In this document: in pieces, positions 27,154 through 59,667 of the stretch | How positions within the stretch are numbered: the first letter of the stretch is position 1 | How the letters are laid out: the number at the start of each line of letters is the position of its first letter | Assembly: GCA_002104945.1 (NCBI GenBank) | Contig: MCFH01000017.1 | Coordinates: 372,001 to 436,000, forward strand | Source: Piromyces finnis finn | Lineage: Eukaryota; Fungi; Neocallimastigomycota | Direction of reading: 5' to 3' | DNA: 64,000 nt | Translations under genes and position numbers: made by a program | The notes under the pieces: model-generated | What the model was told of the DNA's origin: nothing | The model's input: the letters and a program-made list of their open reading frames with translations, nothing else | Databases searched by the model: none

Positions 27154-27640
27154 ATATCAATTACAATTCAAGGGAATGGAAAGAACTTTGTAAGCGTAAG
27201 ATTCAATCTGGTACTAACGAAGGAACACCATTCTTGACGGTAACCGCGGAACTTCTAACCAAAATCATGCCTTTTGCTATTGGCCAGCAATGGTCAATGT
27301 TCAAAAGGTTTGAAGCAACATCCAAGAGCGTCAATGCTGAAGAAACAGTAAGACAGGCCAGGAGGGCCAGCGCAACCAATGGAGATCATAATTTTGTCCC
27401 ATGATAAAATTTTGATCTTTGGCTCGGTGTCCCATTGGAAGTCAAATACAATTATTATACTTTAGTATGATAGTGGCTTTCTTACTTTAATTAAAATTAC
27501 TAGAATACATTATACCCAATTTTTATTCATTTGTGTTTATTTAAACATATTTTTTTTTATTTTTATTTTATTTTAATTTTTATATTACATGTATTATAAT
27601 TTTAATTAAATTAATAATAAAGTTTAAAATATTTGATGCC

Positions 27641-36328: not shown

Positions 36329-37581
36329 TGATACAGATTAATTTTATGTAGAAGAATTTAACTTTAAATAATATATATTTTATTAATAACTTTACTTATT
36401 ACGTTCTAATATTTCTATTTTGTCTAAATACTAAAACGTTAATTCTGTCGTTGTTAATTATTAAACTTTTACTAAAAACAAGAAGCCTCCTTAATAATAA
36501 TTATTCCCTAGTCTATTTATGTAAGTGAAGCTGACTTAATAACTAATTTTCCAATTATAAGGCTAGAATTATATGGATTATACATCTACATTATTCTTTT
36601 ATATTAAATGTTCTTACATTTGTTATACATTTGTATTACATTCTTATACATTATAGAAATTGAAAAGCAAATTTAGGTTTGATAAAGTTTATTTATTATG
36701 TTTATTAAATTTAATTTAATAAAGGTAATTACAAAGATTTTAATAATACATTTACAATTTCTTTTTATACTAACCCTATCATCTACATATAGACCTATTA
36801 AACAAGTTAAAGAATTATCATGTAAAAGTTTTATAAATGTAAAACAGATTATAAAATTTTTTTTACAATAAAACAACAACACAAAATAAAGAAAAAACAA
36901 GAAAATAAATTATATTTAAAAAAATATCTCTTTTATTAATTTTATTTAGTTATTAACTAAATAATAGTCAATAACAATTACATCGTTTTAATCAAGAAAT
37001 TTTACATGTATTTATATTTTTTTGTAAATTATATTTTAATATACTATTCTATTTAATTATACATATATTCAATATAAAATAAACAAAACTAATTTAATAC
37101 TAATTTAATTAAATAATAAAATAATAAAACTAAACTAAAACTAATTAAATACACTTTTGATTCAATTTGAGTAAACTGCAAATTGAATACAGTCCATGTA
37201 TTACCTATATATTAATTAAATATTAATAATACTATTTATTATATATTTATAATTAAAAATACTAATTTAAAACTACGCTAAAGTTATTAAACTAATTTTA
37301 ATTAAATAAAAACTTTTTAAGATTTAATTTGAATATTTAAAATATTTAAATTTAATTATCCATTAATTTAAATATTTATCCAAATTTCATTTCTAACTTT
37401 GATATTTTAAAATTAATATTTATTTAATTATTCCATAAAATTTATACAATAAATTTTATAAACAATTTTTTCATTAAAATATCAAAATTATTATTCAATA
37501 ATTATTAATTAATTATTAAATAATTTAAAGATATACTTTATATCTTTACAATCTCGCCCTTTAAGTCGAGCTCCTGCGAGA

Positions 37582-39219
37582 TTATTTCTTTGAAGGAATA
37601 TCAATTACAAATGGTTGATATCTATGTCTGATCATACCATTGTTATTCCTTGTATAAACTTGATCTTGACTTTCTTTTCTAGACTTTTTATTTTTCCTAT
37701 AAAATTCTTGGATCAATTGTACATCTGAAATTTGATCTTCCGGGATCCAAGTATTTTCGTCAAGATTTTTCCATGTCATCAAGAAAGATTTCTTTCCATG
37801 ATAATTTCTTTCTTGAATAATCTTATCAGGAATCCTATCAATAGTATCAGTAGTTAACTTAATATTTTTTCTTTTATTTATTACTGATCTATTTATAAAT
37901 TCATTTTCGTTATAAGGTTCTAATAACGAGACATGAAAAACAGGGTGGCAACGTAAATTATTTGGCATCTTTAATTCAAATGCTAAAGGACTTACCTTCT
38001 TGATTATTTCAAAAGGTCCGAGCATTTGATCAGCAAGTTTTCTTTTAACATTTTTGTTTGAAGGATTAATACCTTTTAATAACCAAACTTTTTTACCAAC
38101 TTCGAAATTTGGGGATTCCATTCTCTTTTGATCAGCATACTTTTTGTAGGTTTCTTTTGCTTGATCAAGATTTTCTTTCAAAAATTTAATGTTTTCATTA
38201 ATATCCAAAATTCTTTGTTCAGCTCTATTTGGTCTATTCGCTGAAGGAATTTCAGGATTGAATTTTGGATTGAACCCATAATTAGCGAAAAACGGAGATT
38301 GATTGATTGATTGCTGTAAAGTATTGTTATAAGCAAATTCAGCAAAAGGTAACAAATCAACCCAGTTATTCTGTTTTTCGTTAATAAAACAACGGAGATA
38401 TTGTTCCAATATCCCGTTCACCCTCTCCGTTTGACCATCAGTTTCAGGATGGTTTGCAGTAGAAAAAGCAAGTTTAATATTTAACAAATTACATAAGCGA
38501 TTCCAAAAGTCTGAAGTAAATTGAGTACCTCGATCAGAAATGATAGAATCAGGAAAACCATGTAATTTAAAGATATTGTTAACAAAAACATCAGCTGCTA
38601 TAGAAGCAGTAGGCAGACATCTTAAAGGAATAAAATGAGCCATTTTTGTTAACCTATCAACTACAACCATAATGGTGGTCATGTCTTTGGATTTTGGAAG
38701 CTCGACAATAAAATCCATTGACAATTCCGACCAAGCTCTATTAGGCGTGGAAAGAGGAGAAAGCAAACCATATGGTTTATGTCTTGGAACTTTAGCTTTA
38801 CAACAAGTTTCACAAGACTTTATAAATTTTTTAACATCATAACTAAATTTTGGCCACCAAAAATTTCTACTAATTAATTCAATAGTTTTATTAATACCAA
38901 AGTGACCAGCAGAAATAGAATCATGATGTAATTCTAAGACCCTAGTTCTTAATGAAGAAGGAACATAAATTAAATTATCGTAAAGTAAAAATCCTTCTTT
39001 ATCAATTTTAACTTTATTAATATTCCTAATCGGAGGGGACAAAGAATTTTTTTCATTTAAAAATACACAAACTTTATTATATAAATCATCATTTTTTAAA
39101 GAACATAAAATAGAATTGATTAAAGAATCATCTTTATTAAAAGTATTAATTACATTACATGAAATAAAATTACAACTAAAATTACTACATTCAATGTGAT
39201 CACTACGTCTGGATAACAA
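37582..39219 (-). CDS. gypsy-1 integrase with C-terminal chromodomain (part of disrupted pol)
   Basis: HHDSISAGHFG..CETCCKAK zinc finger, SMDFI..SDRGTQF..HPETDGQTE core, GPF motif, and chromodomain-like TWK..NTWIP. Confidence 0.92.
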   Translation of the reverse strand: MLSRRSDHIECSNFSCNFISCNVINTFNKDDSLINSILCSLKNDDLYNKVCVFLNEKNSLSPPIRNINKVKIDKEGFLLYDNLIYVPSSLRTRVLELHHDSISAGHFGINKTIELISRNFWWPKFSYDVKKFIKSCETCCKAKVPRHKPYGLLSPLSTPNRAWSELSMDFIVELPKSKDMTTIMVVVDRLTKMAHFIPLRCLPTASIAADVFVNNIFKLHGFPDSIISDRGTQFTSDFWNRLCNLLNIKLAFSTANHPETDGQTERVNGILEQYLRCFINEKQNNWVDLLPFAEFAYNNTLQQSINQSPFFANYGFNPKFNPEIPSANRPNRAEQRILDINENIKFLKENLDQAKETYKKYADQKRMESPNFEVGKKVWLLKGINPSNKNVKRKLADQMLGPFEIIKKVSPLAFELKMPNNLRCHPVFHVSLLEPYNENEFINRSVINKRKNIKLTTDTIDRIPDKIIQERNYHGKKSFLMTWKNLDENTWIPEDQISDVQLIQEFYRKNKKSRKESQDQVYTRNNNGMIRHRYQPFVIDIPSKK

Positions 39220-39436
39220 ATCAGGTTTGCCACACTTTTTTCCAGCCCTATATATTAACTTAAAATCAAATCTAGATAAGAATTCATATCATCTTATCTG
39301 TCTTTGTGAGAGCATTTCAGGCTTTCTTGGGAAAGTTAAATTCTTATGATCAGTATAAATGACGAACTGATGCTTTGCACCTTCCAGATAGTGTCTCCAT
39401 TCTTCGAGAGCCACTTTGATAGCGAGCAACTCTTTA

Positions 39437-40459
39437 TCATAAATTTGATAATTTCTTTGAGACTTGGTTTAAGCTAGATGAAATAAAAGCAATAGGGTGC
39501 AATTGCCCTTCAAACTCTTGTGAAAGAATTGCACCGACTGCAAAGTTACTATCGTCAGTCTCAACAATAAAAGGTTTGTTGCTATCAGGGTTCATTAAAA
39601 TAGGAGCAGAAGTAAAAGCCTTCTTAAGTGTAACAAATGCGTTTTGACACTCAGAAGCCCAATTAAAAGGAACATTTTTCCTAGTAAGTTTATGTAAAGG
39701 ACTTGCGATTTTTGCAAAGTCTTTAATAAAAATTCTATAATAATTGCATAATCCAATAAAAGATTGGACTTCTTTAACATTTGTAGGAACAGGCCAGTCG
39801 AGGATAGCTTTAACTTTATCTCTATCCATTTTCAGACCATCTTTGGATAATACATAACCAAGAAAAGTGGTTTCTGAAACATCAAACTCACACTTCTCTA
39901 ACTTTACATATAAATTATTTTCTAATAATTTTTCCAATACTTTTTTAACATGTTCATGATGCTCTTCTAGACTATTTGAGTATATTAGAATATCATCAAT
40001 ATATGATATAGCAAAATCATCCAAATAATCACTAAGGACATCATTTATGAAATGTTGGAAAGTAGCTGGTGCATTCTTTAAACCAAAAGGCATGACGAGA
40101 TATTCAAAATGCCCATATCTTGTTCTAAAGGCAGTTTTGTATTCATCACCCTCTTTGATTCTTACTAAATTATAAACAGACTTTAAGTCCAATTTAGTAA
40201 AGTACTTTGCACCCTTCACTCTATCCAATAAGTCACCAATTAATGGAAGAGGATATGAATTTCTAATGGTCATATCATTAAGTTTCCTATAATCAACGCA
40301 TAGTCTTAATGACCCATCTTTCTTTTTGACAAATAAAACTGGTGCTCCGGCAGGAGATGTAGATTTCCTAATGAAACCTTTTTCCAAATTTTCTTTAATA
40401 TAACATTTTAATTCATCTCTCTCTGCCTCAGTTAAAGGATAAAGAGGACCATAAAGCAA
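39437..40459 (-). CDS. gypsy-1 RT / RNase H (frameshifted at about 39445; TGA at about 39290)
   Basis: [32 protein letters not shown]; RNase H continues in another frame ([15 protein letters not shown]). Confidence 0.92.
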
Positions 40460-40473
40460 GTTAGAATTATCCT

Positions 40474-42378
40474 TTAATCTGATTCACAATCGTATTCACG
40501 ATGTGGAGGTAAAATATTACAATTCTTTTCATTAAAAACCTCTTTAAATAATAAATATTGATTTGGGATTTCAACAGATTTTTTATCTTTATTTAAATTA
40601 TTATTTTCAGTTTTACATTTATTAATAATATTACAAGATAAATAATTACAGTTACTAACGGAATTTAATACACAAAAATTGTTATTATTAATCACTTCTT
40701 TTGAAAATGAGTATTGTTTTGGTCCAGTGACCGAATTATTATCTTTATTTAAATTATCATCAATACAATTAATATTATTACATGTACATTTAAAATTACA
40801 ATTATTATTATTATTATTATTATTGCTATTTAAACTATCACTAAATTTAATTTTATTACAACTATCTAAGTTACTAATGGTTTTAACGGAGGTTCTACGG
40901 CCCCTGATATTAACAGTTTCTTCGTCATCACTGGAGTCACAACAAAAGGATTCGTCATAGTCGGAAAAACCACGGTCAATGCAAGAGGATTGTTCATTTT
41001 CGTTATCCAAGGCAGCTTCTTTCCCTTTTCTTGATGATGGCATCGATTTCTTATCCATATTGGTTGTACCCTTATTTCTCCTTTTGCCTACATTACAGTG
41101 TCGAGCACAGTATCCGGAGCTAAAGGCAATTTTTGAGGAATCATGATAATAAACTGGACAATGTTTCTCAATCCAAGGTACTCCAAGAATAACATCGACT
41201 TCGGGAATCCTTAACGAGTACAGTTGAATTACTTCGTAATGGTTCCTTAAACGGAGAATACACTTTTCGGATTCTTTTCTAACAGTGGAATTACCTTGAC
41301 CAAGACCAGAAACCTTAAATGGATTCCTGATATTGTAAAGCTTAATGTTATTAATTCTCGCAAATTCAGGATGAATAAAATTTAAATCAGAGCCGGAATC
41401 AATAAGGACTTTGACTTTCACTTCTTCCATATCGTTTGTTTTTATATAAAAATCGATGATGTTCTTCTTTTCACTTTTGTGTATTTTATATAAGTTTGAA
41501 TCATTCTCAGTAACATCTTTGGTTGGTCTAATTCTTTTGACTGAAGGGGTTGAAGAACTGGCTTCTTCTTCGGAGATAGTCCTTTTAATAATCTTAACAC
41601 TCTTAGGCTTTTTCCTGTTTGGACAATTGAACTGCATGTGTCCAGACTTCCCACAAGAAAAACAAACCCCTTTTTTCTTTAAATCCGATCTAGTAGTAGA
41701 AGGTTCAACGTAATTACTTCTGTGAGATGGGAAGTAATTTACGTTTCGTTGACCCTTGCTAATCCTATATAGGTCAACATCCATTGGATCGTCACGATTA
41801 TAATTTCTTCTATCTTGGTGCGTCATATAATATTCGCTGATGTCATTTCTCTTAGTAAGATTTTCTATGCTAAGGACATCAGAGTAGAGACGCTCTAGCT
41901 GAGTAGGATTTGGGTTGACTATTGCTAAATGTTCACGCATTTTTGGATGTAAGCCCTTTGTGAACATATATATCTTCGCTGCTTCATTGAAATTAGAGTT
42001 TTGGCTAACGCGTTGAAATTCATTAATATATTCAAACACTTTGACAAACTTTCTTTGTTTTATGTTGCAAAGTCTTCCATTTGCAACAATTGTGTCATTA
42101 TTGGGATCCCCGAAATTGGTACGAAGGGCAGCAATAAATTGATCATAGTTTCTTAGAATGGCGTCGTTGTTCTGTCGTAAACGAGCGGCCCATTCTAAAG
42201 GTCTGTTAACAAAGTAAGATATTAAGAAGCGAACTCTCGCTTCATCATTAGCGAATCTATCAGGGTTGGCTTCAATGGCTAGTTCAACCCTGGTCAAGAA
42301 CCCATCTAGTTCTTGTCTTCTTCCTGAGAAAGTTGGAGGATCATTAACTATCCTCAAAGACGCCCCTTGACGGTCCAT
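40474..42378 (-). CDS. gypsy-1 gag-zinc knuckle-protease ORF
   Basis: PPTFSG..LEWA gag, [14 protein letters not shown] knuckle, [12 protein letters not shown] aspartic protease, then an Asn-rich spacer. Confidence 0.92.
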
Positions 42379-45300
42379 ATTTCCGTTTAAGTGGAGGTTA
42401 GATAAAAGTTGGTTTATTTCTTCCAGTATGTTTAATATTTACTTATTTAATTTTTTACAATATTTTAATTAAGATGTCGTCGTAACTCTATCCTATCAAA
42501 CGGTGTTAGACGAGCTCTTAAAAATATAGTAACAAAATTAAATACAGTACAATAGTAGATGTTGGTGGAAGATTAAATAAAGTTGATCCACAATATATAC
42601 AAGTACAATGATGGACGCGGTAGATATCTCTAAAGCAAAGTAGTCGTTCTAAATGACACGGTAGCAATACCAAAACGCGGTAGATAATCCTTTATTACGC
42701 GGTAGCAAATTTCAAAGTAAGGTAGAGAGTCCCTAAAACGCGGTAGTAAAAAAAAAATTTTATTAAATATGTTTTATTAAAAAAAAATTTATAACGTGTT
42801 TTATTAGAACAAAGGTAATTGTTATTGTAAAAGTTTTATAAATGTAAAACAGATTATAAAATTTTTTTTCAATAAAACAACAACACAAAATAAAGAAAAA
42901 ACAAGAAAATAAATTATATTTAAAAAAATATCTCTTTTATTAATTTTATTTAGTTATTAACTAAATAATAGTCAATAACAATTACATCGTTTTAATCAAG
43001 AAATTTTACATGTATTTATATTTTTTTGTAAATTATATTTTAATATACTATTCTATTTAATTATACATATATTCAATATAAAATAAACAAAACTAATTTA
43101 ATACTAATTTAATTAAATAATAAAATAATAAAACTAAACTAAAACTAATTAAATACACTTTTGATTCAATTTGAGTAAACTGCAAATTGAATACAGTCCA
43201 TGTATTACCTATATATTAATTAAATATTAATAATACTATTTATTATATATTTGCTATTAAAAAATGCTAATTTAAAACTACGCTAAAGTTATTAAACTAA
43301 TTTTAATTAAATAAAAACTTTTTAAGATTTAATTTGAATATTTAAAATATTTAAATTTAATTATCCATTAATTTAAATATTTATCCAAATTTCATTTCTA
43401 ACTTTGATATTTTAAAATTAATATTTATTTAATTATTCCATAAAATTTATACAATAAATTTTATAAACAATTTTTTCATTAAAATATCAAAATTATTATT
43501 CAATAATTATTAATTAATTATTAAATAATTTAAAGATATACTTTATATCTTTACATATCAAAAGTTTTATAAAATAAACAAGATTCAGATTTGCATTGAG
43601 TAAATCCAATTTTTGAGAGAAATTCAGAAATAGTGATATTCCAACTACGGCCTGATTGTTTTAATCCATATAACGATTTCTTAAGAAGCCAGAAACCCTT
43701 TTTGTAGTTTTTATCATCTTGGAGAATAGAAACATAAACATTTTTGTCTAATGGAGCATTTAAATACGCGGCCTTAATATCTAATTGATAGGTGTTCCAT
43801 TTGAATTTACCAGCTAAAGAGAGAATGAGTCTAATGCAAACAATGTCTAATGTTGGTGAGTAGATATTGTCATAATCAATTCAGTATTTTTGTTTTTATC
43901 CTCTAGCAACTAATCTAGCTTTATATGTTGAAATTTTATTGTTCGAATCACGTTTTATGTTAAAAACCCATTTTATAGAGATAACATTTGTATTTTCTGG
44001 AATATTTTTGGTGAATATCATAACTTTATTATTGTATAGATTTAAAAGTTCATTTCTAATAGCGCGTCTCCATTCTTTCCAATCTTCTCTTTTAATTATA
44101 TTATTGAAAGTTAGTGGAACCTCAGTATTAATTGAAAATATTGTGTTACATTCAGAATTATTATTGTTATTGTCAATATTATAAATAGTGTTGTTTACAA
44201 TATTTTCAGAAATATTTTCTTCTTCAGTTGTATTTGTAATTCTATATTTGCTAATATGTGTATCTTCAGTTGATGAAAGTGGTCTTTTATTGTTGTTTCT
44301 GCTAATATTTTCATTATTATCTTTGTTGGAATTCTCGTTAACTAATTTTTTATTTTGAATAATTACATCATTTTCATAATTGTTAAGATTATTGTCGTCT
44401 TGAAAAATTTATTCTGTGTAACCATCTTCACTATTTTCATAATTATATAAATTATTATTTTGTTGAAAAATTTCTTTTGTGTAACTATCCTCAAGAATAT
44501 TATTATTATTGTCAAAATTATTATTGATTTTAATTATGGTAGGATAGTGCTTGGTATAGATCTACTCATAGTTAGATTCCTGATCATATACCATTGTACC
44601 ATTAGAAATTGTTGTTTTTGAAATTTTTGGGTAACCAGGATTGTTGCTGGACTCAATTTTGAGATTGCCTGGTTTTTCTTCTATGAAAACTGCTTCCCTT
44701 ACTAAATGTATATTATGATCGTAAAAAATTCTTTCTTAATACCATTTCGTTTACAAAAATTTAATAATTTTTTATTGTATTCTTTTCCATTATCAGACTT
44801 AAATATTTTAATTTTTTCATTTGGGTAGTTATTGTTGATTAACTTAATAAAATTGATAGTCGTACTAGTAACATCTGATTTGTTTTTTAGATTAAATACC
44901 CAACCTTTTCTAGTAGCTTCGTCAATAAAAGTTAAAATATATTTATATTGATTTATTGATGGTGGTAAAGGTCCCATAACGTCGGAATGAATAACTTCGT
45001 TTCTTCTAGTCGCTTTGGGTGGAATTCCATTGTGTGGTTTTCTATTTAATTTTGATATTTTACAGTGTAGACATTTATTATTTTCAATTTTGTGTGACTT
45101 TAAAAATTTTTCTAGATTTTTGTTATAGTAATGTCCTAATCTATTGTGCCATATATTATTTGATAAATTTTCATTGATACAATATAACTTTTTATCATTG
45201 AAATTAATATTATTTTGTGTTTTAATTTTGAAATTATTTCCTTTATTGACATGTGTTCTAAATATATTTTTATTATTGTATTTAATAATTAACTGTGGTT

Positions 45301-48474: not shown

Positions 48475-49206
48475 TGTAAAAGTTTTATAAAAAATTTAAA
48501 ACAGATTATAAAATTTTTACAATAAAACAATAAACACAAAATAAATAAAAAAGAAACAAGAAAATAAATTATATTTAAAATATCTCTTTTATTAATTTTA
48601 TTTAGTTATTAACTAAATAATAGTCAATAACAATTACATTGTTTTAATTAAGAAATTTTACATGTATTTATATTTTTTGTAAATTATATTTTAATATACT
48701 ATTCTATTTAATTATACATATATTCAATATAAAATAAACAAAACTAATTTAATACTAATTTAATTAAATAATAAAATAATAAAACTAAACTAAAACTAAT
48801 TAAATACACTTTTGATTCCATTTGAGTAAACTGCAAATTGAATACAATCCATGTATTACCTATATATTAATTAAATATTAATAATACTATTTATTATATA
48901 TTTGCTATTAAAAAATGCTAATTTAAAACTACGCTATAGTTATTAAACTAATTTTAATTAAATAAAAACTTTTTAAGATTTAATTTGAATATTTAAAATA
49001 TTTAAATTTAATCATCCATTAATTTAAATATTTATCCAAATTTCGTTTCTAACTTTGATATTTTAAAATTAATCTTTATTTAATTATTCCATAAATTTTA
49101 TATAATAAAATTTATAAATATTTTTTTTATTAAAATATCAAAATTATTATTTAATAATTATTAATTAATTATTAAATAATTTAAAGATATATTTTATATC
49201 TTTACA
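48475..49206 (-). mobile_element. Solo LTR family A
   Basis: Matches the gypsy-1 LTR; TSD ATGTA at 48470-48474 and 49207-49211. Confidence 0.93.
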
Positions 49207-50618: not shown

Positions 50619-51880
50619 TATAAACTGAATATTATTTTTGTTTTATATTTAAAGTTTATATTAAAATTATTAATATATGATAGCTATGAAAAATATAAAA
50701 TACATGAAGATTTATCTTTCTTATACAACTTGTGGCTTGATTTTAGACCACTAAATATTTAATACAAATACATTAAATTAATACAAATTGTAACGATATA
50801 AAGTATCTGTAAGAAACATTATTTAATACACTATTTAATACATAATTTGATACATTAATTAAATACATTAATTAAATACATTGATTAAATACATTGTTTT
50901 ATTACATTAATTTAGTTGTATCATTTTAACCAATTCACGTATAATGTATTAAATTACTATAAAAGAATAACCTTGATTCTCTTTTGAGAAATCAAGAGTT
51001 ATTATTATATAAATTTATTAATAAATAAAGTATTAATTATTTTAAAAATAATGTTTATTTAACGTGTGTTTTTATATTTAAGTGTTAATATTTAATATTT
51101 TGCTTATTAGTATTTTTATATAATAAACTCGACATTAATGTTTTTATTTTCTTTCTCAAATTAGTAATATTTAATTATTTAATTATTATTAATTTGTAGA
51201 AGAAGTTATTTATAATTTATTTATAAGTAACTTCTTACAATAATAACTCTTCTTAAATATTCTAAAATACATATTTATATTTCTTAAAAAACTAAATTTA
51301 CAATTTCTTTTATTCTTTTATTAACAATAAACTTAACAAAGATAAGTGTAAAATTATAATTAAATATACTGCAATATAATTTCGAACCTAGAATGATAGA
51401 AAAATAAACTTTTTTTATTTATTTTATCAAAATGTAAACAAATACTATATATTGCTTAACTTTTATTTTTTATTTAATATTTTAAGAAATACTAAAATGA
51501 TATATTTAAAATAAAACAAATAATGTTATTTATATTTAATAATAATAAATAAATAAAGGTATGTTTCTTGATTTCTCCTATTTATTTATTGATTTTAACA
51601 TATGAATATATAATATGCCAAAAAAGAATTTTCATAAATTCAAATTGGATAAATAAATAAAAAATAATTATATTCATATAAATTTACACCAATTTTATAT
51701 TTTATTGGTAGTAATGGAGAATTCATATAAATATTAAATATAATATTTAAAAATCTCCTAAAACATGGACACATAAACATATAAATATATACATACATAA
51801 ACATATACAAATATATATATGTTTCCATCTGTATTCTAGATATAAACAGTGGAGCACATTTTAATATTAATAAAACATAT

Positions 51881-53362
51881 TGTAAAAGTTTATAAAAAAA
51901 GCAGATTATAAAATTTTACAATAAAACACAAAACATGAAATAAATAAAAAGAAACAAGAAAATAAATTATTTAAAATATCTCTTTTATTAATTTTATTTA
52001 GTTATTAACTAAATAATAGTCAATAACAATTACATCGTTTTAATCAAGAAATTTTACATGTATTTATATTTTTTGTAAATTATATTTTAATATACTATTC
52101 TATTTAATTATACATATATTCAATATAAAATAAACAAAACTAATTTAATACTAATTTAATTAAATAATAAAATAATAAAACTAAACTAAAACTAATTAAA
52201 TACACTTTTGATTCAATTTGAGTAAACTGCAAATTGAATACAGTCTGTAAAGATATAATATATATCTTTAGATTATTTAATAATTAACTATTAATTATTA
52301 AATAATAAATTAATATTTATTAAAATTAACTATGAAGTTTTTAATATTCAATGGAATAATTTAATAATAAATTATTTTATAATAATTCCGTCAAAATTAA
52401 ATAAAGATAAATATTTAAATTTAAGGAACAAAAGAATCCTAATTAAATTTAAATATTTCAAATATTTTAAATATTCATAATAACTTTAAATACTTTTTAT
52501 TTAATTTTAGAATAGTTTAATAATAATATACTTTCTTATTTAAATTTAGAATAGTTTAATAATTTTAACTGAGTTTTAAAAATAGATGTGTTTATATTTC
52601 AATAGGAAATATATTAAGAATAGTATTGATAATATTAAATTAATTTATAGATAATACCTGAGCTTTATTCAATTTTGAGTTTACTCAAATTAAATTAAAG
52701 GTATAATGAATTAGTTTTAGTTTAGTTTTATTATTTTATTATTTAATTAGATTAGTTTTGTTTATTTTATATTAAATATATGTTTATTTAAATAGAATAA
52801 TATATTAGAATATAATTATGAAAAAATATAAATACATGTAAATTTTATCAATTGAATCGATGTAATTGTTATTTTATTTCTAACCATTAATAAAGAAGAT
52901 AATTTTTAAAAAAAAAAAAGAAACTCCTATTTTTATTTTATCGTGTGTTTAATTGTTTTATTGTTAAATATATAATCTGTTTTAAGATTAATATTTTACA
53001 CAGTCCATGTATTACCTATATATTAATTAAATATTAATAATACTATTTATTATATATTTATAATTAAAAATGCTAATTTAAAACTACGCTAAAGTTTTTA
53101 AACTAATTTTAATTAAATAAAAACTTTTTAAGATTTAATTTGAATATTTAAAATATTTAAATTTAATTATCCATTAATTTAAATATTTATCCAGATTTCA
53201 TTTGTAACCTTGATATTTTAAAATTAATCTTTATTTAATTATTCCATAAAATTTATACAATAAATTTTATAAACAATTTTTTTTATTAAAATATCAAAAT
53301 TATTATTCAATAATTATTAATTAATTATTAAATAATTTAAAGATATACTTTATATCTTTACA
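51881..53362 (-). mobile_element. Solo LTR family A split by an A2 LTR
   Basis: Halves at 51881-52245 and 53001-53362; flanks CATAT/TATAT (one mismatch). Confidence 0.88.
52246..53000 (+). mobile_element. Solo LTR subfamily A2
   Basis: TGTAAAGATAT..TTTTACA; TSD CAGTC at 52241-52245 and 53001-53005. Confidence 0.92.
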
Positions 53363-53373
53363 TATATATTATA

Positions 53374-53706
53374 TGATAATAAATGTTGTTATAATATCCT
53401 TCGTTAGTCAACAAATATAACAACATTTCTTAAAATATAACTAAATTTAACGAGTGGATACTAACTCCACTGTAGAGGGTACATTCTTGAGATACACATT
53501 CTTAATATTATTAAATTAATTAATTTAAAAATTATATTTTTATAACATATTACATATATATTTTATTATTATTATGATAATAAATGTTGTTATAATGCCC
53601 TTCGTTAGTCACAAAAATAACAACATTTCTATATATAAAATCTAACGAGTGAATAGAATTTCACTGTAGAGGGTATACTCTTAAGAGATAAATTCTTAAG
53701 ATCATC
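53374..53706 (+). ncRNA. Putative structured RNA motif, two tandem copies (period 201 bp)
   Basis: Five complementary segment pairs are kept in both copies with compensatory or wobble-compatible changes; the class is unknown. Confidence 0.45.
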
Positions 53707-55248
53707 GAATAAATTAATTTAATATATATGTATATATGACTATTTAATTAAATTATTATGACAATTCTTTTAATTAATATTTTAATAACAACTCAATAAA
53801 TAATTTGAGTTGCAATATTATTATTTTATATTAATTTCTTATTATTAAATAATATCATAATAATTTAATTAATGCAAGTATTAAATACATTTAATACTTA
53901 AATGAAATTCGTTAGAATTTCATAAGTTATTTGTTCTAGATACAAATAACATTAAAAGTCTCCTTACATTTACTATAATGAATTTTTAAATTCATTTATT
54001 AAAAGGAGCAATAAGAAACAATAAATTGTTTCTTAAAAAACAAAAACAAACAAAACAAAAAAAAAAAAAAAATATTGTTTCTTAAAACTTTTTAAAATAA
54101 TTATAAAAATAGAATACCTTGTCAAGAAATAAGTATTTGTTTCTTACAAGGTAATAAAAACAATAAACAGGAAAGGAAAAGGTAATGTTTATAAAATATA
54201 TAATATATTATTATTATTTAAAATAAGTGAAAATATATGTATATTTGTTTAATGTTTTATTACTTTATTACTTCTATTTTATTAGAATTATCGGTTATTA
54301 AGTTTTTCCCAATTAAATAATAATTGGTTTTGCTTAATAATACGAGACTAATATGTATAGAGTATTAGTCGAATTTTCTAGAGTTTTTCTACTAATATTT
54401 TCTCTAGAAGAAATTGTTAAGATTAGAAAACACTTTAAAATTTTATGTTAGTTTAGAATTAAATAGTATTAATAGTTTATTTAATTAATTTATTTATTCA
54501 TTACTAACTTTTAATGGTGCTCCTAAGTATCTTTTAATTTCTTGATAAGTTATATAACTTATCAAAGTAAAAGGAGCAATGTAAGAAACATAGATAAATT
54601 CTATATAATTTATCTATTTTCTTATTAATTAATATTTATTATTATTTATTGTTTAATACATTAATTTAATACATTATTTAATACACTATTTAATACACTA
54701 TTTGTAGAAGAAGTTATTTATAATTTATTTATAAGTAACTTCTTACAGTTGATAAAGAATGAAATTTATAAATAATGAATTAATAGAATAGCTGATTTTA
54801 AAATTATATAAACTTAATATAAATTAAAATAATAGTAAATAATCAAAATAATATAAAATATAAATGTTTAATTAAATTTTAAAAATGTAAAATATAAACA
54901 TCTTTTATTTATAAACAAACTTAAATGTAATTATTTATTATAAATAGAAATAGAAAATATTATTTTTAAAGATTGTTACTAATTAGCCAGGAAAAGTAGA
55001 ATATTTTAAAATTATAATAAATTAATATATTTTTTTTATAATACATAGCGAGATGTATTATACATTTATTTTAAATAAATAAACTAATATTATAAAACAA
55101 GATGTGTTTTTTAAACTTTAAATTATATTTAATAATTATATAAACTTGTAGAATGAGCAAGTAAAAATAAATCATTCAATTACACACAAATATACCACTT
55201 TCTAAGCTTATTTAGAATTAAGGTATATTTGAACGTGTGTCACAGTAT

Positions 55249-57438
<2,190 letters not shown>

Positions 57439-58942: not shown

Positions 58943-59667
58943 TGTAAAAGTTTATAAAAAAACAGATTATAAAATTTTACAATAAAACATAAAACACGAA
59001 ATAAATAAAAAGAAACAAGAAAAACAAAATATATTTAAAAATATCTCTTTTATTAATTTTATTTAGTTATTAACTAAATAATAGTCAATAACAATTACAT
59101 CGTTTTAATCAAGAAATTTTACATGCATTCATATTTTTCGTAAATTATATTTTAATATACTATTCTATTTAATTATACATATATTCAATATAAAATAAAC
59201 AAAACTAATTTAATACTAATTTAATTAAATAATAAAATAATAAAACTAAACTAAAACTAATTAAATACACTTTTGATTCAATTTGAGTAAACTACAAATT
59301 GAATACAGTCCATGTATTACCTATATATTAATTAAATATTAACAATACTATTTATTATATATTTATAATTAAAAATGCTAATTTCAAACTACGCTAAAGT
59401 TATTAAACTAATTTTAATTAAATAAAAACTTTTTAAGATTTAATTTGAATATTTAAAATATTTAAATTTAATTATCCATTAATTTAAACATTTATCCAAA
59501 TTTCATTTGTAACTTTGATATTTTAAAATTAATCTTTATTTAATTATTCCATAAAATTTATACAATAAATTTTATAAACAATTTTTTTTATTAAAATATC
59601 AAAATTATTATTCAATAATTATTAATTAATTATTAAATAATTTAAAGATATACTTTATATCTTTACA
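58943..59667 (-). mobile_element. Solo LTR family A
   Basis: Matches the gypsy-1 LTR; TSD GATAT at 58938-58942 and 59668-59672. Confidence 0.95.

Follow-up and report, generated by a model that had tools for sequence, protein, structure and literature searches.

The DNA analysed here, a window of 64,000 nucleotides from the anaerobic gut fungus Piromyces finnis (assembly GCA_002104945.1, contig MCFH01000017.1; window positions are contig positions minus 372000), has a GC content of 14–32% and carries eukaryotic genes, for two GT10 fucosyltransferases and an argininosuccinate synthase, as well as transposon sequences, a LINE ORF2 and a Ty3/gypsy element whose integrase has a chromodomain. Beyond about 27 kb, nearly all of the window is transposon DNA; there, with every host gene over 20 kb away, lies a single long-period tandem array (TRF, 53367–53722; period 194, 1.8 copies, 82% matches). 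The array consists of two cores with a GC content of 0.26–0.27, compared with 0.06–0.12 in the spacer and flanks, and it adjoins a solo long terminal repeat (LTR). The features of the locus are as follows:

51883–53362, minus strand: solo Ty3/gypsy LTR (TG..CA, 723-bp family), ending ...TTTACA at 53362
52246–52999: related LTR in the opposite orientation, inserted in the solo LTR
53363–53367: right target-site duplication TATAT, 5 bases before copy 1; its left counterpart is CATAT, just before 51883
53372–53505, plus strand: copy 1 core, scoring 154.8 bits with covariance model R1
53381–53392/53417–53428, plus strand: copy 1, stem a
53395–53400/53476–53481, plus strand: copy 1, stem b
53402–53407/53447–53452, plus strand: copy 1, stem c
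53453–53458/53466–53471, plus strand: copy 1, stem d
53487–53492/53500–53505, plus strand: copy 1, stem e
53506–53572, plus strand: AT-rich spacer between the copies, GC about 0.06
53573–53702, plus strand: copy 2 core, scoring 149.9 bits with covariance model R1
53582–53593/53617–53628, plus strand: copy 2, stem a
53596–53601/53670–53675, plus strand: copy 2, stem b
53603–53608/53642–53647, plus strand: copy 2, stem c
53648–53653/53660–53665, plus strand: copy 2, stem d
53681–53686/53694–53699, plus strand: copy 2, stem e
53753–53765, plus strand: TTATTATGACAAT, the initial 13 bases of a would-be third unit, by direct reading

The two cores are 89–90% identical when aligned and differ by 17 substitutions and 3 indels spanning 7 columns. 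Owing to these 7 indel columns, the start-to-start distance between the copies is 201 in the 5′ part of the unit and 194 in the 3′ part, the former value being the period given in the preliminary description of this DNA. The indels, of 1, 5 and 1 bases, rule out a coding exon. Outside the cores the resemblance fades rapidly: only the first ~25 bases of the spacer (53506–53572) align to the sequence that follows copy 2, with about 72% identity. Both units begin with TATGATAAT, and the word TTATTATGATAAT at the start of copy 2 is the same word as TTATTATGACAAT at 53753–53765, where a third unit would be expected to start and where TTATTATGAYAAT is found again. This microhomology word is likely to mark the site of the duplicating slippage or unequal exchange. 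On the favoured reading, a single local event, slippage or unequal exchange involving two TTATTATGAYAAT words, duplicated a segment of about 200 bp.

Five stems, in the order a-b-c-a′-c′-d-d′-b′-e-e′, are present in both copies, as had been proposed from the initial reading of the sequence, and 36 of 36 pairs are standard in each copy; when the 3′ partners are shifted by 1–3 columns as a control, only 41–49% of the cells pair. Given the alignment alone, RNAalifold returns stems b, c and d, that is, a three-way junction, together with the 3′ hairpin e. The differences between the copies are unevenly spread over this arrangement. The 70 paired columns hold 6 substitutions, all six of them transitions and all pair-keeping, compared with 11 substitutions (7 of them transversions) and all of the indels (7 gap columns) in the 62 unpaired columns; the loops change at about 3 times the rate of the stems, and every transversion and every indel falls in a loop. 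Four pairs have changed on one side (A-U/G-U, U-G/C-G, G-U/G-C and G-U/A-U), and one has changed on both, a G-C/A-U swap in stem d. Stem a, with 12 bp, is invariant, its 24-nt and 14-nt arms standing unchanged beside drifting sequence. These counts agree with three earlier observations, namely, that substitutions within stems keep pairing, that stem d harbors a true G-C to A-U compensation, and that loops and spacers drift. The one-sided changes in stems b, c and e go via G-U pairs, which on the other strand become A-C. Pairing retained through G-U on the plus strand only, as previously asserted, is thus found in these three stems; the minus strand, however, has a G-U-dependent feature of its own, a 6-bp extension of hairpin a. 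Taken as a whole, the substitution pattern suggests selection on a plus-strand RNA fold, although, coming from two sequences only, it falls short of proof.

If so, the 130-nt core would be constrained now, or would have been until recently, as a plus-strand RNA fold. The predicted core is a three-way junction made of a closing helix b, a helix c with a large variable loop and a hairpin d, followed by the 3′ hairpin e. The 5′ arm of stem a shortly precedes b, and the loop of c contains the 3′ arm, so that stem a would either form a pseudoknot with b and c or compete with them in a two-state switch. In the two copies, respectively, the calculated energies are −16.4 and −15.2 kcal/mol for the conformer with a, d and e, and −14.3 and −17.8 kcal/mol for the conformer with b, c, d and e. 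By these estimates, stem a and the b–c pair of helices are nearly isoenergetic, which is compatible with either a pseudoknot or a two-state switch. The joiner from a to b measures only 2 nt, but the other two joiners, of 9 nt and 13–18 nt, may provide slack enough for a pseudoknot of a with b and c.

The energetics of the complete unit are less uniform. Whole-unit minimum free energy (MFE) z-scores are −1.7 (copy 1) and −4.6 (copy 2) for the plus strand, with corresponding minus-strand values of −1.2 and −4.0, and copy 1 alone folds no better than its shuffles (z = −1.7). The conformer with b, c, d and e is 3–3.6 kcal/mol weaker on the minus strand. In shortened windows, the minus strand folds equally well or slightly better, because hairpin a extends there by the 6-bp helix that needs G-U pairs.

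LTRs of the 723-bp family flank the Ty3/gypsy element at 36823–43555 and also occur as solo copies at 48498–49206, 51883–53362 and 58945–59667. Copy 1 starts 10 bases beyond the end of the second of these (53362). The inverted LTR inserted within that solo copy explains the long inverted repeats at 52022–53362. At the four other LTR copies (ends at 37550, 43555, 49206 and 59667), the flanking sequences are unrelated to the unit, which implies that the unit is older flanking DNA outside the LTR; the divergence between the two units is 13%, as against 2–5% between LTR copies. The original placement of the unit inside a mobile element is not supported: the unit lies just outside a solo LTR and is missing both from the LINE and from the flanks of the four other LTR copies. 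We accordingly rejected the possibility that it is part of the Ty3/gypsy LTR, which it merely adjoins and in or beside whose four other copies it is absent. The solo LTR at 58945–59667 has a perfect 5-bp target duplication, GATAT, and interrupts another plus-strand gypsy element within its reverse-transcriptase region. A further small, gene-less LTR element occupies 55246–57438, with direct repeats at 55444–56024 and 56859–57438 that are 97.8% identical, the first of them holding an (ATA)65 microsatellite and being followed by a primer-site-like TGGTGGAG; its inner part of about 800 bp includes a GC-rich 100-nt island (56028–56125).

Other retroelement affiliations were considered as well. The tandem monomers at the 5′ ends of LINEs (mouse L1 A/Tf, ~200 bp) resemble the unit in being head-to-tail, non-coding, multi-hairpin units of 120–200 bp with a possible pseudoknot; here, however, no LINE body follows, similarity to LINE 5′ ends is lacking, and there are only two copies. 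A LINE 5′ monomer array was rejected on the grounds that it has no downstream ORF and no similarity to LINE ends. No ORF of at least 50 aa is found downstream of the unit before 57.8 kb, and the unit is absent from the LINE in the window (5′ end at 27.7–28.0 kb) and from three contigs with related LINEs, an ORF2 homologue search having yielded only short metagenome or fragment contigs. Derivation from the LINE in antisense was likewise dismissed, the only sequence in common being the 12-mer TCCTTCGTTAGT at 27210–27221. This 12-mer, which belongs to the stem-a loop of copy 1, lies on the minus strand there, antisense to a LINE fragment within its 3′ coding portion, with no similarity in the flanks, and is probably a chance match. 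A poly(A)-tailed retroposon was also rejected. The A-rich run at 54039–54073 lies between 14-nt direct repeats (54025–54038 and 54074–87) and is therefore a separate tiny insertion with its own flanking repeat. The whole of 54025–54087, a 35-nt A-rich run between direct repeats ATTGTTTCTTAAAA, is situated in a hairpin's 3′ arm and has the look of a retro-insertion consisting of a tail alone, complete with target duplication.

Neither nhmmer, relaxed BLASTN nor the covariance model R1 recovered a third copy of the unit in the 64-kb window; the copy 1 query ended at 53503, and the model searches and the later BLAST skipped or masked 53504–53539. A pattern scan of metagenome contigs gave 10 matches, all attributable to chance, in contigs with 40–52% GC, 8 of them in the same gene. 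Two scans of viral contigs yielded no match to the unit, and a scan of viral contigs for a neighbouring motif gave 7 matches that are probably due to chance as well.

The array opens an ORF-free block, 53368–54700, that is unusually rich in local structure. It contains 7 perfect hairpins of at least 9 bp in 2 kb, compared with 0.64 per kb over the whole window, and its mean 120-nt MFE is −19.6, compared with −12.2 ± 5.6 in other AT-rich stretches. Among the block hairpins are those at 53902–53923 (with TTCGTTAG, which also occurs in the unit, in its loop), 53926–53950 (with the self-complementary loop UCUAGAU), 54012–54035 and 54542–54565. Two further units are discernible at 53893–54034 and 54500–54640, each consisting of CTCCT(T/A)A, a hairpin, AAAAGGAGCAAT, and TAAGAAACA with a second hairpin; the stem sequences of the two differ. 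In both, a pyrimidine strand comes first, then an inner hairpin and a purine strand, and last a 3′ hairpin that ends in UUCUUA, a layout loosely like that of stems b, d and e of the tandem unit. Homology between the tandem unit and these neighbouring CTCCT...AAGGAGCAAT units was rejected, the alignment score being 108 as against 97 ± 8 for shuffles, with no match to the R1 model. At the end of the block, a 48-nt word (54700–54747) is 100% identical to one at 51192–51239; it contains a 45-nt TG...CA partial palindrome and has no matching target duplications. Each of the two words lies downstream of a 12/13-mer array (TATTTAATACAY)n, which itself comes after GTAAGAAACAT (50809 and 54587).

Comparison with known RNA families was negative throughout. 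An Rfam scan, envisaged at the outset as a check, matched no family: at the gathering score, the whole window gave no match, and at E up to 10 with lax filters, a 701-nt region and each copy alone gave only sub-threshold miRNA, snoRNA and cis-regulatory noise. The unit had initially been put forward as a candidate ribozyme, with resemblances to twister and pistol in particular, and this part of the proposal has no support. Hammerhead ribozymes have the core CUGANGA ... GAAA around a three-way junction. Neither CUGANGA nor even CUGA occurs on either strand of either copy, so that both the hammerhead core and box D are excluded. Hammerheads of retrozymes and Penelope-like elements are likewise found in tandem repeats adjoining LTR-type DNA, but the unit has no CUGANGA and lies outside the adjacent LTR. 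Twister, twister-sister, pistol and hatchet were rejected because none of the models matches at E up to 10; the likeness to twister and pistol is limited to short words, and their covariance models find no match in either copy.

There is a parallel in architecture with the HDV-like ribozymes, such as those at the 5′ ends of the R2 and L1Tc retrotransposons, in which the helix order P1-P2-..-P1′-P4-P4′-P2′ is similar to the a-b-..-a′-..-d-d′-b′ of the unit: in both, a second helix encloses the 3′ arm of an outer stem, and the final strand is preceded by a hairpin. In HDV-like ribozymes, P1 extends for 6–7 bp from the cleavage site and the catalytic C is located in the P4–P2′ joiner. The unit differs in having a 12-bp stem in the place of P1, no 3-bp P3 or P1.1, no C in the joiner and no Rfam match. 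The HDV-like reading was rejected on two of these points: stem a, which takes the place of P1, has 12 bp instead of 6–7 bp in both copies, and the d′–b′ joiner reads GUA(G) in both, with no C in the place of the catalytic one.

Weighing these observations, we tentatively favour the view that the unit is a locally duplicated structured RNA module, pseudoknotted or bistable, of a non-coding and probably element-derived transcript. Under this scenario, it would be a non-catalytic, cis-acting structured module of a non-coding transcript within the 1.3-kb block 53368–54700, in a transposon graveyard, the block itself being probably the relic of a gene-less retroelement or else a long non-coding RNA. 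We infer that the transcript would be read from the plus strand and that its fold would have been kept by selection for a role in cis. Bistable or pseudoknotted folds are common in retroelement leader and packaging hairpins and in the 3′ stem-loops that LINE reverse transcriptases recognise. The block shares with these, and with retroelement dimerisation hairpins, the presence of clustered conserved hairpins in non-coding, element-derived RNA; by contrast, no element boundaries, primer-binding site or tail can be assigned in it. What stands of the initial characterization as an RNA-level structure of unknown class is the pair-keeping pattern and the lack of a catalogued class to which the unit belongs, with modest support, since only two sequences are available and P is about 0.04 a priori (see below).

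The principal alternative, plausible enough to be taken seriously even though we lean away from it, is a neutral tandem duplication of junk DNA with chance inverted repeats, in which the six pair-keeping transitions reflect luck and the post hoc choice of stems. There are only two copies, they lie in a transposon graveyard, the boundaries of the unit show a microhomology such as slippage typically leaves, and homologues are missing from the window, the metagenome contigs and the viral contigs. Moreover, GC/AT exchanges make up 13 of the 17 substitutions, an excess in keeping with AT-biased mutation. In neutral simulations, 17 random substitutions with the observed transition share were placed on either copy, and all pairs of the post hoc stems were kept in 0.03–0.04% of the runs, but the resulting P of about 0.0004 is inflated because the stems were chosen after both copies had been seen. 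For an unbiased test, the MFE fold of one copy alone was scored on the other copy. The plus-strand fold from copy 2 keeps 32 of 34 pairs when scored on copy 1 (P = 0.039–0.045), whereas the fold from copy 1 scored on copy 2 is not significant (P = 0.38); neither are the minus-strand folds, be it from copy 2 scored on copy 1 (P = 0.14) or from copy 1 scored on copy 2 (P = 0.45). In these tests the plus strand does better than the minus strand. The a priori P of about 0.04 comes from a scan of more than 1000 windows, in which such a 1-in-25 event is expected somewhere. The built-in shuffle control (251 of 500) is powerless with two rows. Against neutral duplication stand the nature of the stem changes, all six of them pair-keeping transitions including one double change, the roughly threefold faster change of the loops, which carry all of the transversions and indels, and the arms of stem a (24 nt and 14 nt), untouched amid the drift.

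Less probable than a module of a longer transcript, and in our estimation improbable overall, is the possibility that the two copies are a tandem pair of paralogous genes, each specifying an independent small RNA of ~130 nt that would represent an undescribed class. The cores are discrete, GC-richer islands with a diverged AT spacer between them, and neither core has a run of 4 or more T on the plus strand, as would suit such genes. Conversely, the unit lies in a transposon nest, matches no Rfam family and lacks a box D, an Sm site, tRNA-like A and B boxes, and an ACA tail accompanied by a pocket. Each of the familiar classes was rejected on specific grounds. For a box C/D snoRNA, the 5′ word AUGAUAA lacks the second G-A step of RUGAUGA, and there is no CUGA. 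For a box H/ACA snoRNA, in which the hairpins have a pocket and an upper stem and an ACA stands three bases short of the 3′ end, the 24-nt loop of hairpin a shows no conserved upper stem when read on the plus strand, and an ACA after the loop of hairpin e is present only in copy 1. For a spliceosomal snRNA, including U11, U12, U4atac and U6atac, the two copies have no RAU(3-6)GR Sm word in common and no Rfam match; the minor spliceosome has been reported to be retained in this fungus (PMC10639083). For a tRNA or a tRNA-derived SINE, ARAGORN finds no matches in the window, and on direct reading the A- and B-box words are partial and in the wrong order. No conserved upstream promoter element is visible either, which is accounted for by the duplication beginning only a few bases before the core.

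A bolder form of the favoured reading would be a long shot: anaerobic gut fungi could possess an undescribed RNA class, pseudoknotted or bistable, to which the unit belongs and in which a 12-bp stem swaps with a three-way junction, whether to act as a switch or to let gene-less retroelements process themselves.

We consider it quite unlikely that the signal operates at the DNA level, as hairpins or cruciforms, or as repeated binding sites, of a transposon end or another DNA-acting protein. In each copy the two arms of stem a form a perfect 12-bp inverted repeat, the block is dense in perfect palindromic hairpins, and the 45-bp TG..CA palindromic word occurs twice nearby with 100% identity, all of which would fit this idea; yet 4 of the 5 variable pairs would turn into A-C mismatches if formed in DNA or by the opposite strand, and the unit is bordered by neither a transposase gene nor terminal inverted repeats nor target duplications. 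Finally, a self-cleaving ribozyme of a new class, releasing unit-length RNAs from the tandem, is very unlikely, with little in its favour beyond the tandem arrangement, the possible pseudoknot and the HDV-like helix order, against which are set the lack of a family match even with lax filters and of CUGANGA, a 12-bp stem a where HDV-like P1 has 6–7 bp, a joiner GUA(G) without C, and loops, the usual seat of catalytic cores, that are the least conserved parts of the unit.

Should the locus be only a drifting duplication, it would serve as a warning that two copies and one compensatory change can mimic covariation, at odds that the unbiased test puts at about 1 in 25. If, on the other hand, the structured RNA module that we favour is real, it would be a compact candidate RNA switch by virtue of its two near-isoenergetic conformers, and the gene-less, transposon-derived DNA of a gut fungus would hold a repeated, shaped RNA module.
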